This document shows, in pieces, positions 1,354-6,012 of a stretch of 6,026 bases of DNA. The translations under genes were made by a program, and so were the position numbers. The DNA comes from Paramicrosporidium saccamoebae KSL3. Taxonomy: Eukaryota > Fungi > Cryptomycota. Position 1 is the stretch's first letter. Every line of letters begins with the position of its first letter. The notes under the pieces are model-generated. The model searched no databases and was not told the DNA's origin. It saw only the letters and a program-made list of their open reading frames with translations. The stretch is from contig MTSL01000022.1 in the NCBI GenBank assembly GCA_002794465.1, positions 12,093-18,118 of the forward strand. Direction: 5' to 3'.

Positions 1354-1374
1354 CCAATGAGGACAATTGTTTAC
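1354..1374 (+). promoter_or_regulatory. CCAAT-N9-TGTTTAC module upstream of gene A
   Basis: CCAAT 1354-1358 (-60 from ATG) and TGTTTAC 1368-1374. The same arrangement recurs upstream of C and D. Confidence 0.65.
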
Positions 1375-1413: not shown

Positions 1414-2331
1414 ATGAGGCTCCTCGTCGCCGCAATACTGACGCTAACTTCCATTCATGCATCCAAACAAGGGAAAATTAATACAATAGAAAGGGAGCTT
1501 GATGAAAGCTACTATGACGTCGATGCAGCCGTTGTTCCCAGCCTGAGACGGAACGTGCGCATCACTATTCCTCAGGAAAGTAAACATCAGTCCAAGAAAC
1601 AGAGCCAACAGCCCAAGAAAAGTGGCAAGGCCAAGAAATATGAGTACTATTCTGAAGAGTATACCACTGAAAGCTATGATTCTGAGGGATCTACCTATGA
1701 AGTATCAGATCCAGGTTCGGAATATATTCCCGAAGTATCAGAGTCAGATTCGGAATACATTTCTGAAGTATCAGAGTCAGATTCGGAATACATTTCCGAA
1801 GTATCAGCGTCAGATTCGGAATATCTTCCCGGAGTATCAGCGTCAGATTCGGAATATATTTCCGAAGTATCAGAGTCGGATCCGGATTATAGTCCCAAAG
1901 TATCGGATTCAGGTTCGGAATCTATTTCTGAGGTATCAGAGTCAAGTCCGGATTCATCTAGCGCCCCTACTGAGAGTGAATATTGGAGCACTTCGGACAT
2001 TGAAGACTTTACAGACGGCGCCGATGATCCTATGGAGGTGATAGAGACTGTTCTGAAAGATCCCACAGCATATACCGAGGAGGTGACAGACGTAATGCAG
2101 CAGCTTATTGATGCCGACGAAATTATAGTGGCGGCTGATTTGGCAAAAGTGCTCTGCGAAAAAGTCTACAGGAAGAAAGCAATTAATATACGGCTACCAA
2201 GCCGCAAACTAGATTCACAGGACACGCAGGATTTCCACGCCATCTGTGAGGCATGTCCCAACAAGACATCAAATTTCATGCAATTCTGCAGTTCAATCCA
2301 ACCCAGACAAATGAGAAATAAGCGGAACTAA
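1414..2331 (+). CDS. Putative secreted protein A (305 aa): signal peptide, basic patch, acidic Ser/Glu 11-aa repeats, C-terminal 4-Cys domain
   Basis: First ATG at 1414 (the track starts at TTG 1405) gives MRLLVAAILTLTSIHA. The in-frame 33-nt repeat preserves the frame. The C-terminal domain aligns with proteins B and C. Confidence 0.88.
   Translation: MRLLVAAILTLTSIHASKQGKINTIERELDESYYDVDAAVVPSLRRNVRITIPQESKHQSKKQSQQPKKSGKAKKYEYYSEEYTTESYDSEGSTYEVSDPGSEYIPEVSESDSEYISEVSESDSEYISEVSASDSEYLPGVSASDSEYISEVSESDPDYSPKVSDSGSESISEVSESSPDSSSAPTESEYWSTSDIEDFTDGADDPMEVIETVLKDPTAYTEEVTDVMQQLIDADEIIVAADLAKVLCEKVYRKKAINIRLPSRKLDSQDTQDFHAICEACPNKTSNFMQFCSSIQPRQMRNKRN
1717..1947 (+). repeat. Coding tandem repeat, 7 x 33 nt (11 aa, consensus SEYISEVSESD)
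   Basis: Units start at 1717, 1750, 1783, 1816, 1849, 1882 and 1915: SEYIPEVSESD / SEYISEVSESD / SEYISEVSASD / SEYLPGVSASD / SEYISEVSESD / PDYSPKVSDSG / SESISEVSESS. Confidence 0.95.
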
Positions 2332-2598
2332 ACTGTGACTCATTGACATTTTAGTCCGTAAGCATTGCCACAGTAAGCCTGCCCTTATAGCAATAACGTG
2401 TTGGATGTGGAAAACTATCGCCAGTCTGTTCATTAATGGAGATAATCTACTGTCATCGTGTTGGGACGTAGGATGTTCACATATTCAACTACCCACCCTC
2501 TTATCTTATGATCATACAGGGAATAAATAAGCTAGAAAATTCCGGTTATGGATGTAGACTTTTTATGCCCTGGTCCGGTATACTAACACTACGGACAT

Positions 2599-2618
2599 TG
2601 TTTACTTGTCGGTCCAAT
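2599..2618 (+). promoter_or_regulatory. TGTTTAC-N8-CCAAT module (swapped order) upstream of gene B
   Basis: TGTTTAC 2599-2605 and CCAAT 2614-2618 (-62 from ATG). The flank GGACATTGTTTACT nearly equals GGACAATTGTTTACT at gene A. Confidence 0.55.
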
Positions 2619-2675
2619 AAGCTGTAAGCGACTATTTAATCGTTGGATCGTCCGCTGGAGGGACAACAACACTCG

Positions 2676-3887
2676 ATGAAGATTCAACTGCTTGTAGCCT
2701 CTCTCCTTGCCTTGGGTACTGCCGGCCAGCTGGGCCAACGCCACCCCCAACGGATGAATTTCTGGCAAGACCTCGAACGCCAGCAGCAGCAGCCTCAACA
2801 GTACCAGCCCGGTCCAGCTCGACGCCGGGAACCCAATCCAAACCTTCAGAGTCGCCTCGACTTTTTCCAACAACAAGAACAGCCGATGCAGTACCAACGC
2901 GAGACCCCATATGCACGCGTCGGGGCGGGCATTAGAGAGCGTATGGGTGCATTCATGCAGCAACCGCAGCAAACAGTACGTGAACCAATGCGCTCGACAG
3001 GTGTGAGCCAAGGCGTTCAGGATCGGATGAGAGCGTTTGCACAACCGATGAATCAGCAGACATTGGGGCCGCAAAGAGGAAGCCGACTTAATATGGATAG
3101 TTATTCAGCGTTCAATCAGTCGGCACCCGCCCCAATGGAATCGAGACCGAGATATGAATATGCCAGTCGGACGCAGCATCAGCAATCCCCCCAGCAATAT
3201 TCTCCTCCCGAACCGACACCCTATGAAGCCCCGATACAATCTTATGAAAATGCTCCTCGGGAATACTCAGAGCCGTCCTTTGCTTATGAGCTTCAAAATG
3301 CACCGAAGGCTATGTATGATCATTCTCCCATAATGTCCACAGAACCGGCTTATTTGTACAATGAACCATTATTAGAGCGGGAGGGAGCGCAGCCTGCAAT
3401 GCCGACGGAGGAATACTCCTACCAGCCCGAACCCTCACCTGTACAATACCGTGAATCTGGCAGCAACGTTGCCGAGATGGCAAATCTCATGAACAGTAGA
3501 GCAAATTCATTCCACGCCCCGCCTGAATACAGTCCGCCAAACCCATACAATCCCGGTATGGAAGGTGATCTGGACCAGGCTATCGAAGATTTAAAGAATA
3601 TTAGAATCAAAGGTGCGGGCCTGAAGTCGGCTTTGGGAGTAATCGCAAATTCTCAAGACGCATCTGAAAGATTTATGGAGATTAAGAGCGCTCTGCAGAG
3701 ACGTACTAACAATAATCTCGTCGACGATGTTATATTGGCAGCAAAGACTCCGGGATTCTGTCAGAATGTTTTTGGAGAAAGATCTATTCCATTAACCATG
3801 CCACAGGGCAATCCACCGAAAGCTGCCCAGCTGTCCAAGACCCTGTGTGACTACTGTCGAAACTTGGTTAGAACTTGTAGAGCATGA
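2676..3887 (+). CDS. Putative secreted protein B (403 aa): signal peptide, Q/P/Y/R-rich disordered region with repeated amphipathic motifs, C-terminal 4-Cys domain
   Basis: First ATG at 2676 (the track starts at TTG 2643) gives MKIQLLVASLLALGTAG. Long ORF, AATAAA directly after the TGA, and C-terminal similarity to proteins A and C. Confidence 0.9.
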   Translation: MKIQLLVASLLALGTAGQLGQRHPQRMNFWQDLERQQQQPQQYQPGPARRREPNPNLQSRLDFFQQQEQPMQYQRETPYARVGAGIRERMGAFMQQPQQTVREPMRSTGVSQGVQDRMRAFAQPMNQQTLGPQRGSRLNMDSYSAFNQSAPAPMESRPRYEYASRTQHQQSPQQYSPPEPTPYEAPIQSYENAPREYSEPSFAYELQNAPKAMYDHSPIMSTEPAYLYNEPLLEREGAQPAMPTEEYSYQPEPSPVQYRESGSNVAEMANLMNSRANSFHAPPEYSPPNPYNPGMEGDLDQAIEDLKNIRIKGAGLKSALGVIANSQDASERFMEIKSALQRRTNNNLVDDVILAAKTPGFCQNVFGERSIPLTMPQGNPPKAAQLSKTLCDYCRNLVRTCRA

Positions 3888-3893
3888 AATAAA
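3888..3893 (+). terminator. Putative polyadenylation signal AATAAA of gene B
   Basis: Canonical hexamer immediately after the TGA (3885-3887). Confidence 0.55.
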
Positions 3894-4062
3894 ACCGTGA
3901 TTCGCATAGACTTGAAAAAATTGGCAGTAACTAGTGATCCAATTGCGTGTAGGGGCAACAGTCATCGTATAGCAGACACTCTAACGGAAGTAACTTTTAT
4001 CTAATCCCATATTAATTGTTCACTAGGGAACAAAAACGTCTGCGTACACCCTACGATAAACC

Positions 4063-4102
4063 CACCTACTCACCTACTCACCTACTCACACATCCACCTA
4101 CC
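4063..4102. repeat. 8-bp tandem repeat (CACCTACT) x3 plus 2 degenerate units
   Basis: CACCTACT at 4063, 4071 and 4079; CACACATC at 4087; CACCTACC at 4095. Confidence 0.85.
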
Positions 4103-4108
4103 AGTCAG

Positions 4109-4129
4109 CCAATTAGAAAAGTTGTTTAT
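4109..4129 (+). promoter_or_regulatory. CCAAT-N9-TGTTTAT module upstream of gene C
   Basis: CCAAT 4109-4113 (-62 from ATG) and TGTTTAT 4123-4129, followed by an AT-rich TATCTATATAT at about 4136-4146. Confidence 0.65.
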
Positions 4130-4170
4130 TCAACTATCTATATATTGATCCCCACGACGTTGAAACTTTA

Positions 4171-4893
4171 ATGAAGCTTTCAAGTCAGGTCCTCATTTCC
4201 TTACTGTTTTCTTCTGCTATTGCTGGTGGGTATCAGCAATCCGCCAGGTATAGAGACTTTGGCATCCCCCAAAGGGACCAGCCGAGCAAAAGAAATGTCC
4301 AGGCGGCACGAGCCCAGTTCGAAACCCAACCCGTTGCACCCGCAAGAGCCCCGTATTCACAACCAGCTCGACGTAAGCTGGATCCCTCAAGATATCCACA
4401 ACAGACATCGGCCGGATACACCAGAAGCTCAGTGGCACCGGTGCAGGCAAATTTGGTGCAACAACGGCGTGCAGCATTTGAGAGTGCGCCCGAACCTGTA
4501 GTGAGATCTACGCCACGACCAGTGCAACGTGCCATGTGGTCGCAGGCAGTCCAGCAGGAACCTGAAGAACCGCAAAACTATCAAAATATACAATTTGATG
4601 AGAAACCGGATGATCTTTTAAAGACTCTCTCGGATTACAATGTGTCGGGCAGAGAGCTATCTTTCGTGCTGGACATATTGGTGAGGACACCAAATGCATC
4701 CGATTATGCTTTGCCTATCCAAAGAGCCATACAGAATAAAATCTGGAAAGGACAGTTTGGAGATGCGGCTTTTATAGTCTCTTATCCAGGCTTCTGCAGA
4801 AAAGTGTTTGAGAGTTCCCATCCAATCTTTTACTTGCCCGATTCTAGCGAAGCTGATGAGTTGGATAATGCGATAAATCTTTATTGCTCATGA
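4171..4893 (+). CDS. Putative secreted protein C (240 aa): signal peptide, Q/P/R-rich region, C-terminal 2-Cys domain
   Basis: ATG at 4171 gives MKLSSQVLISLLFSSAIAGG. Ungapped 69-aa alignment to protein B (17 identities including PGFC..VF). N-terminus is similar to protein D. Confidence 0.9.
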   Translation: MKLSSQVLISLLFSSAIAGGYQQSARYRDFGIPQRDQPSKRNVQAARAQFETQPVAPARAPYSQPARRKLDPSRYPQQTSAGYTRSSVAPVQANLVQQRRAAFESAPEPVVRSTPRPVQRAMWSQAVQQEPEEPQNYQNIQFDEKPDDLLKTLSDYNVSGRELSFVLDILVRTPNASDYALPIQRAIQNKIWKGQFGDAAFIVSYPGFCRKVFESSHPIFYLPDSSEADELDNAINLYCS

Positions 4894-5117
4894 GGGAGTG
4901 GTGGAAACTCTGGATAAAGAATGTGATTGAATAGGACGTCCTTGCTACACAGAGTCACCCTACCAAGACTAATTCAACTGCCAGCCAAATTAAGATCAGA
5001 CCACACATTATAAGCAGGTGCAATTCATAAAAAGCTTGCTTTCCTACTAAATTGATAGAAACTAGAAGACTATATGATTATAGGATTTTACTATTACAGG
5101 GCTATATGGGCACTTGG

Positions 5118-5138
5118 CCAATAGCCGCAATTGTTTAC
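5118..5138 (+). promoter_or_regulatory. CCAAT-N9-TGTTTAC module upstream of gene D
   Basis: CCAAT 5118-5122 (-62 from ATG) and TGTTTAC 5132-5138. Confidence 0.65.
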
Positions 5139-5179: not shown

Positions 5180-5635
5180 ATGAAGCTTTCAATCGTTTTC
5201 ATTGCTCCCGCCCTCTTCCTCACAGCTGAAGCAGGTGGTCGTTTCCCTCGATCCGAATACAGAAACCTCCATGCCGGTTACAATCAAACGAACGTAGGTG
5301 CTTTGAGAAATAGATACGAACAGGAAGCGCAACCGCAACAAAGTAGTTACGGCGGACAAAATGTCAGACGACTCGACAATTCGAGATACGACTTTTTAAA
5401 CAAGCCGTATGAGGGAACGCCCTCATATCGGGCCCCACCATCGAGATATCCGCCCCCACAACGACAGGCACCGGTGGAGGAGTACTATGACACTGACTTG
5501 TCCTATGTCCCCAACTCGTATTCAGTCCCCGGTAGAAACTACGAAAACCCCGACGGCAGTTACAATCTCTATGCACCACTCACCGTCACCAATACAGAAG
5601 AGTCACATCGACGCCGGCATGCTCCCTACTACTAA
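5180..5635 (+). CDS. Putative secreted protein D (151 aa): Tyr/Pro/Arg-rich, Cys-free, lacks the C-terminal domain
   Basis: First ATG at 5180 (the track starts at TTG 5114) gives MKLSIVFIAPALFLTAEAGG, 10/20 identical to the protein C N-terminus. AATAAA lies 17 nt after the stop. Confidence 0.85.
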   Translation: MKLSIVFIAPALFLTAEAGGRFPRSEYRNLHAGYNQTNVGALRNRYEQEAQPQQSSYGGQNVRRLDNSRYDFLNKPYEGTPSYRAPPSRYPPPQRQAPVEEYYDTDLSYVPNSYSVPGRNYENPDGSYNLYAPLTVTNTEESHRRRHAPYY

Positions 5636-5658: not shown

Positions 5659-5720
5659 AGGGATCTTGTAAGAATCAATCCATAGCAGCCAGGAAAGCCC
5701 GTTCAAGCCGACATTAAATC

Positions 5721-5876
5721 CCACCGGCTCATGGTAACATTCGATTCCACCGGCCCATGGTAACATTCAATTCCACCGGTCCGTGGTAACATCCAATTCC
5801 ACTGATTCATGGTAACATCCGATTCCACTGATTCATGGTAACATCCGATTCCACTGATTCATGGTAACATTTAATC
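5721..5876. repeat. 26-bp minisatellite, 6 units, invariant core TGGTAACAT
   Basis: Units start at 5721, 5747, 5773 (CCACCGG type) and 5799, 5825, 5851 (CCACTGATTC type). Units 4 and 5 are identical; the last is degenerate at its end. Confidence 0.95.
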
Positions 5877-5916: not shown

Positions 5917-6012
5917 TACCACCTAACCATCCAGTCCCTCAACCACCTAACCACCCAGTCTCTCAACCACCCAGTCTCTCAACCACCCAGTCTCTCAACC
6001 ACCCAATCTCTA
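5917..6012. repeat. C-rich 16-bp tandem array (AACCACCCAGTCTCTC) with a 24-bp higher-order start
   Basis: Perfect 16-mers at 5949, 5965 and 5981; two-mismatch copies at 5925 and 5997; 8-bp [T/A]ACCACCT inserts at 5917 and 5941. Confidence 0.92.

Follow-up and report, generated by a model that had tools for sequence, protein, structure and literature searches.

The final 6,026 nt of contig MTSL01000022.1 (assembly GCA_002794465.1) of Paramicrosporidium saccamoebae KSL3, hereafter the window, were analyzed; the right edge of the window was the contig end. Three tandem genes in the window, designated A, B, and C, were found by pairwise and profile comparison to share a genuine C-terminal domain of ~100 aa. 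P. saccamoebae is a rozellid (Rozellomycota), intranuclear in Saccamoeba, and a polar filament is present in its spores (PMC5701793). The overall explanation preferred here, with slightly better than even confidence, was that the three tandem genes carry an orphan six-helix domain stapled by disulfides, which would act as an extracellular anchoring or binding module.

The C-terminal domain of A, B, and C

A preliminary description, made from the sequence alone, had placed at the C-terminal ends of A, B, and C a common, folded, mostly helical domain of no recognized family, marked by Cys residues, and these points were borne out. At the level of sequence, (i) the ten Cys codons listed in Table 1 stood where that description had put them and were the only ones in A, B, and C; (ii) C-x2-V-[FY]-x8-[LM]-P began at 2155, 3759, and 4795 in A, B, and C, respectively; (iii) CxxC-x-N began at 2245 in A and at 3846 in B; and (iv) B (from 3567) and C (from 4603) shared 17 identities over 69 ungapped positions, a count matched by none of 20,000 shuffles. 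The pairwise comparison was solid for B and C (BLASTP E 8e-10, shuffle z 16.5), marginal for A and B (E 0.002, z 4.0), and not significant alone for A and C (E 0.2, z 0.5). The membership of A was secured because independent profiles matched A despite these weak pairwise scores: a hidden Markov model (HMM) built from stand-alone relatives of other organisms only (see below) gave 29 bits for A, 26 bits for B, and 33 bits for C, with no match to D (the fourth gene of the tandem) or the kinase; a profile lacking A and its orthologue still found A with 28 bits; and leave-one-out profiles, with A, B, or C omitted in turn, recovered the omitted protein each time.

The domain of B, modeled by AlphaFold2 from an eight-sequence alignment, had a mean predicted local distance difference test score (pLDDT) of 93.3 and a predicted template modeling score of 0.87, and it displayed six helices, at positions 3–14, 20–32, 36–52, 56–64, 68–73, and 87–100 of the 110-aa stretch. 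The full-length AlphaFold2 model of C was composed of two parts: residues 1–140 with pLDDT 41–73 and merely two short helices, and residues 146–240 with pLDDT 92–97 and six helices, their register matching that of B. What precedes the domain was thus of low confidence or disordered.

The checks against Pfam, PDB sequences, and Foldseek libraries all ended without significant match. No Pfam-A family was above threshold for A–D or for the eight family members. Two sub-threshold Pfam matches, zf-AD (PF07776; 12.9 bits versus a cut-off of 28, E 0.024–0.13) and the TB domain (PF00683; 13.7 bits versus a cut-off of 22.2, E 0.053), were rejected as chance matches to the Cys spacing. PDB sequence searches with three- and eight-sequence profiles gave chance matches only (best E 0.05–0.1); Foldseek gave a best E of 0.59 and template modeling scores of at most 0.45 against PDB, the top entries being mostly designed helical repeats, and a best E of 0.68 against BFVD. 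The models describe, with high confidence, a compact six-helix unit of an undescribed family, the predicted fold being novel with respect to the searched libraries (PDB and BFVD).

In GenBank, a single 950-aa gene (PSACC_00230/PJF19954.1) covered window positions 1414–4893 (L001:6235-9714), and it was composed of A residues 1–292, B residues 9–390, and C residues 2–240 linked by short translated intergenic stretches. It omitted the final 13 residues of A and of B, with the loss of Cys4 of A and Cys2–4 of B. Each of A, B, and C harbored a hydrophobic signal-peptide-like N-terminus (12-residue hydropathy 2.2–2.6), was closed by its own stop codon, and was preceded by its own copy of a conserved upstream motif (see below), and the orthologues were separate open reading frames (ORFs) or proteins on metagenome contigs. 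Because of these four features, we argue for three independent secreted-protein genes, A, B, and C, and regard the GenBank fusion as an annotation artefact. It is hardly credible that the annotation PSACC_00230/PJF19954.1 is correct and that splicing yields one 950-aa protein with three domain copies, when every segment has a signal start and a stop codon, the orthologous ORFs are separate and each ORF has its own motif, and the fused model has to trim the terminal Cys of A and B and translate intergenic DNA. A correction of the gene model follows, whatever the function.

Cysteines of the domain and their predicted pairing

In the model of B, Cys1 was located within helix 5, Cys2 inside the end of helix 6, and Cys3 just beyond helix 6; Cys4 lay in the tail, 7 residues further in B and 11–12 residues further in A and the stand-alone proteins. 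Four Cys were present in all relatives, and C alone was reduced to two. C has certainly lost Cys4, because the protein ends one residue past its second Cys. Whether this last Cys of C corresponds to Cys2 or Cys3 hinges on a gap of 2–3 residues in the loop that joins helix 5 to helix 6. Ungapped, it stood at +30 from Cys1, the same as Cys2 in A. The B–C pairwise alignment paired Leu, Leu/Ile, Tyr, and Cys in helical register, and helix 6 of the C model ran to residue 238 and so ended immediately ahead of Cys239, which is how Cys3 stands relative to helix 6 in B; because of this pairwise match and this helix 6 register, the last Cys of C was taken as the probable counterpart of Cys3.

With the last Cys of C so equated, C1–C3/C2–C4 would be the most economical pairing; C1–C2/C3–C4 is possible, and C1–C4/C2–C3 is disfavored if C retains a disulfide. 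The preliminary description had proposed C1–C3/C2–C4 from the two-Cys state of C; that state and the helix 6 register favor it, and it is a pairing that we infer. The same holds for its preference for disulfides over zinc, which we infer because every member bears a secretion signal, the Cys count is even, and the two-Cys domain of C was still modeled confidently. In the oxidizing secretory pathway, the four Cys would form two disulfides, most likely C1–C3 and C2–C4; the first would hold helix 5 against the end of helix 6, the second would fold the C-terminal tail back against that helix, and C would have dispensed with this second, tail staple.

Two other uses of the Cys were weighed. A structural zinc site made of the four Cys (C ... 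CxxC ... C), in place of disulfides, is very unlikely: the Cys spacing is like that of a Cys4 knuckle and zf-AD came up among the sub-threshold Pfam matches (E 0.13 for A and 0.024, 12.9 bits versus 28), but these scores were far under the gathering score, all family members bear secretion signals, and the domain of C, with two of the ligands lost, was still modeled with pLDDT 92–97. It is also most improbable that the CxxC is redox-active, the ancestral stand-alone protein being a small secreted thiol-disulfide oxidoreductase or sensor. Such a function would agree with C-x2-C-P being invariant in all four-Cys members, but no thioredoxin-like or Erv-like match was obtained in Pfam or Foldseek, the CxxC of the all-helical model stands where helix 6 ends, at its C-terminal side, and not at a helix N-terminus, and C is retained though it has no CxxC.

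Relatives, gene content, and upstream element

The three domains were combined into a HMMER profile, which was searched against 1.84 billion cluster representatives with a cut-off of E<1e-3, and six proteins were recovered: the fused GenBank model (three matched stretches), P0003, P0004, and P0005–P0007. A word-seeded second search with an eight-sequence profile added a single extra cluster, P0010. Full-length C, used as the query of a word-seeded search, gave no match; its sole database copy is part of the 950-aa fused model, which is too long for the length range covered by that search. P0003 and P0004 were the orthologues of B and A, respectively, annotated as Joint Genome Institute (JGI) metagenome hypothetical proteins and originating from a close relative; their contigs had ~70% nucleotide identity to the window where alignable. 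Over aligned codons, orthologue identity was 45% for A and 54% for B in MAFFT alignments (51% for B by tblastn), and the orthologue of D was 74% identical, D being the most conserved gene of the cluster.

P0005–P0007 (147–163 aa) consisted of just a signal peptide and the domain, the four Cys of which kept the common pattern. The stand-alone relatives P0005–P0010, all Logan metagenome proteins, had no disordered N-terminal extension and no annotation, and these secreted proteins of ~150 aa displayed the pattern GFC ... C-x2-C-P ... C with four invariant Cys. On contig L005, a stand-alone domain gene and a gene for ribosomal protein S7e were neighbors on opposite strands; the P. saccamoebae cluster was also S7e-linked, and the two S7e proteins were 82% identical. 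Because of this S7e neighbor and this S7e identity, the short proteins are regarded as products of close relatives at the equivalent locus. In the high-GC relatives (59–61% GC; L005:652-6250 and L006:501-3153), after the domain gene came genes for a MAPEG-family protein and an alanyl-tRNA synthetase; the equivalents of these two genes were beyond view in P. saccamoebae, the contig of which ended before them.

As far as the databases show, the domain family appears confined to the Paramicrosporidium clade, and its stand-alone form is likely the ancestral state. By alignments, leave-one-out profiles, and models, A, B, and P0003–P0010 share a predicted six-helix domain of ~100 aa behind a signal peptide, with [FL]C in helix 5 and, after helix 6, C-x2-C and a more distal C; C was a two-Cys variant. 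A new protein family of small size is defined by this locus, the stand-alone protein being the clear candidate for its ancestral form.

Five ORFs were found on one strand of the window, K2 (25/31–1251) and A–D, the latter four arranged head to tail inside 4.2 kb (Table 1). In an exact-sequence look-up, D alone was on record at NCBI; A, B, C, and K2 had no exact entry, because the annotation there was fused or missing.

Table 1. Coordinates and basis of features in the 6,026-nt window
Feature	Position	Strand	Basis
K2: protein kinase with signal-peptide-like N-terminus and C-terminal hydrophobic segment	31..1251	+	Pfam Pkinase E 3.9e-34
ATTGTTTAC motif, 48 nt 5' of A ATG	1366..1374	+	Conserved 46 nt 5' of A orthologue, L004
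Gene A: signal peptide, then acidic region rich in Ser/Glu/Asp and bearing 11-aa repeats, then C-terminal domain	1414..2331	+	ORF, Cys positions, orthologue P0004
33-nt tandem repeat, 7.5 copies, encoding the acidic 11-aa repeats of A	1699..1944	+	Tandem Repeats Finder score 324
Domain copy of A; Cys at 2155, 2245, 2254, 2287	2032..2331	+	Profile alignments spanning A residues ~207–300
ATTGTTTAC motif, 79 nt 5' of B ATG	2597..2605	+	Equal distance before B orthologue, L002
Gene B: signal peptide, then low-complexity region rich in Gln/Pro/Tyr, then C-terminal domain	2676..3887	+	ORF, orthologue L002:1581-2861
Domain copy of B; Cys at 3759, 3846, 3855, 3876	3555..3887	+	AlphaFold2 model
GTTGTTTAT motif, 50 nt 5' of C ATG	4121..4129	+	Motif match
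Gene C: signal peptide, disordered region (first 75 aa D-like), and C-terminal domain	4171..4893	+	ORF, AlphaFold2
Domain copy of C; Cys at 4795 and 4885, protein stopping one residue past 4885	4606..4893	+	AlphaFold2 residues 146–240
ATTGTTTAC motif, 50 nt 5' of D ATG	5130..5138	+	Conserved before D orthologue, L002
Gene D: secreted Tyr/Pro/Arg-rich protein without the domain and without mature Cys	5180..5635	+	Exact NCBI protein

The regions ahead of the domain differed in composition: A (mature isoelectric point 4.3) had 17% Ser and 12% Glu; B had 11.2% Pro and 11.5% Gln, with its Cys confined to the C-terminal end; C was rich in Ala, Gln, Pro, and Arg; and D had 13% Tyr, 11.5% Pro, and 11.5% Arg. 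The orthologue of A (P0004) had a different, Ser/Asp/Gln-rich repeat region, so the repeats of A would turn over quickly; A and this orthologue both had basic C-terminal tails. The N-terminal 75 aa of C (4171–4395) had 35% identity to D (5180–5389; E 4e-6), and by this match D and the N-terminal part of C are paralogues, and C is composed of a D-like front and a B-like domain. The low-complexity regions were 42–49% identical between orthologues. The pattern [VL]..R..[FY]...P was looked for as a repeated element of the disordered regions; it reached significance in C only, with nothing in B, and was dropped. The preliminary description had further suggested, as conjectural roles of the domain, polymerization, targeting, or translocation, with variable disordered cargo carried by it; A, B, and C indeed have disordered fronts, but the domain is stand-alone in relatives and so is not intrinsically a carrier. 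Because the ~150-aa proteins of relatives hold the domain alone, the disordered regions are best regarded as lineage-specific additions.

In the close relative, C and its flanks (window ~3900–5103, ~1.2 kb) had no counterpart between the orthologues of B and D (L002:2873-3107), and C was either gained in P. saccamoebae or lost in the relative. No A orthologue was found within 1.5 kb 5' of the B orthologue (L002:1-1500), the A orthologue being on a separate short contig, L004; the gene order in the relative may differ from that of the window. An 8/16-nt repeat of CACCTACT type was located at 4060–4101, upstream of C. Noncoding tandem repeats at 5711–5875 and 5918–6011 (26/52-nt and 16/24-nt units) occupied the final 300 nt of the contig and probably caused the assembly break at the contig end.

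K2 harbored HND and DYG motifs, an N-terminus with hydropathy 2.6, and a 19-residue hydrophobic stretch at its C-terminus, and its nearest solved structure was PKA (1e-19). K1, a K2 paralogue with the same motifs and topology, was located in tandem just upstream (L001:3248-4426). K1 and K2 were missing from the called genes on record, and the locus analysis adds these two kinase genes. A signal peptide plus a hydrophobic tail would place their kinase domain in the lumen, and they may phosphorylate products of the cluster, e.g., the adjacent secreted Ser/Glu/Asp-rich A.

The element [AG]TTGTTTA[CT] preceded each of A, B, C, and D by 48–79 nt. Seven matches were counted versus 1.5 expected, an approximately five-fold enrichment over shuffles, and none of 200 shuffles had as many. 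The element was also present in orthologous or flanking DNA (L002:1502-1517, L002:3133-3140, and L004:423-430), its distance being kept for the orthologues of A, B, and D. A further copy was observed ~100 nt 5' of K1 (L001:3145-3152). A–D are candidates for a co-regulated cluster with a common upstream element; this element matches the core site of forkhead factors (reverse complement GTAAACA), which would be candidate regulators.

Role of the domain and comparison with known systems

The domain is proposed to be an extracellular anchoring or protein-binding module, ancestrally stand-alone and fused in this lineage to disordered segments. It would tether the Pro/Gln/Tyr-rich (B and C) or acidic Ser-rich (A) disordered segments into an extracellular parasite structure, the candidates being the spore wall, the polar filament, and the parasite surface, with K1 and K2 as possible modifiers. 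A structural role in one of these three places is tentatively put at somewhat less than an even chance, a rating given because of (i) the Tyr/Pro/Gln-rich and acidic repeat compositions, (ii) the terminal Cys, (iii) the analogy to the microsporidian polar tube proteins (PTPs) PTP1 and PTP2, and (iv) the lack of a PTP homologue in an organism with a filament.

Several observations weigh against this explanation: (i) A–D and the eight family members, searched against Pfam-A, had no match to a polar tube or spore-wall family at E<=1; (ii) a literature search on the locus tags and sample accessions gave no result, and no paper naming PSACC_00230; (iii) a disordered segment is absent from the stand-alone relatives, and a structural role is therefore not required of the ancestral protein; (iv) the alignments given to AlphaFold2 were shallow (7–8 sequences); (v) when C was aligned by hmmalign to a profile built without C, its last 13 residues stayed unaligned and its last Cys unplaced; and (vi) with a dS of ~1–2.7, near saturation, the ratios of nonsynonymous to synonymous substitution rates (dN/dS) are rough values. 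These ratios, 0.17–0.33 for both domains and low-complexity regions, speak in its favor, in that all parts appear to be under purifying selection.

The rival that carries most weight, and which we consider nearly as likely as the structural role, is that A–D are secreted host-directed effectors of this intranuclear parasite, the Cys domain binding a host target or mediating uptake and the disordered regions carrying short linear motifs with an action in the amoeba. Secreted kinases are typical of effector arsenals in other intracellular parasites, and here kinases with secretion signals adjoin the cluster; signal peptides, an orphan family that is restricted to one lineage and has gained or lost members (C being absent between the L002 orthologues of B and D), fast-evolving low-complexity regions (42–49% identity between orthologues), and the basic C-terminal tails of A and its orthologue would likewise suit effectors. 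Against this, at this resolution diversifying selection was not apparent from the dN/dS of 0.17–0.33, compositions of the Tyr/Pro/Gln-rich and acidic-repeat kinds are commoner in matrix or structural proteins, and no recognizable host-mimicking domain was found in Pfam. The anchoring or binding module outlined above is still preferred. A narrower proposal, that the RPS7e-linked cluster of two kinases plus A–D encodes structural components of the polar filament or spore wall in Paramicrosporidium, with the Cys domain as a disulfide-dependent assembly unit, is doubtful and is put forward as a speculation with a low chance of being right. If it were true, these short-branch relatives would assemble their invasion apparatus out of proteins that have no sequence relationship to the canonical PTPs of microsporidia. 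The locus supplies concrete, testable candidates for polar-filament proteins, namely, secreted, Cys-capped, low-complexity proteins around an orphan domain.

Small secreted helical proteins stapled by disulfides include the saposin-like, CFEM, elicitin, and nsLTP classes. The predicted domain resembles them in being an extracellular all-helical unit of ~100 aa with few conserved cystines, but it differs in Cys number and pattern (C ... CxxC ... C here), and no member of these four classes was found among significant Pfam or Foldseek-PDB matches.

As for the polar tube, PTP2 is Lys-rich and has more numerous conserved Cys. In PTP1, a Pro-rich protein, the core consists of variable repeats and the conserved Cys are terminal; the microsporidian polar tube is dissolved by reducing agents, and ptp1 and ptp2 lie at one locus (PMC7040029). 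The P. saccamoebae proteome gave no PTP homologue by HMM despite the polar filament, and the genome paper left open a shared origin of rozellid and microsporidian filaments (PMC5701793). A–C differ from PTP1 and PTP2 in having no detectable sequence similarity to them (Pfam here; HMMs of the genome authors) and in having Cys only in the C-terminal helical domain, C being moreover Arg-rich with two Cys. They resemble PTP1 and PTP2, in composition only, by signal-like N-termini, Pro-rich or repeat-rich fast-evolving cores, and Cys near a terminus, in assembly, by a proposed dependence on disulfides, and, in arrangement, by adjacent genes, A–D standing in tandem in analogy to, and not in synteny with, ptp1/ptp2.

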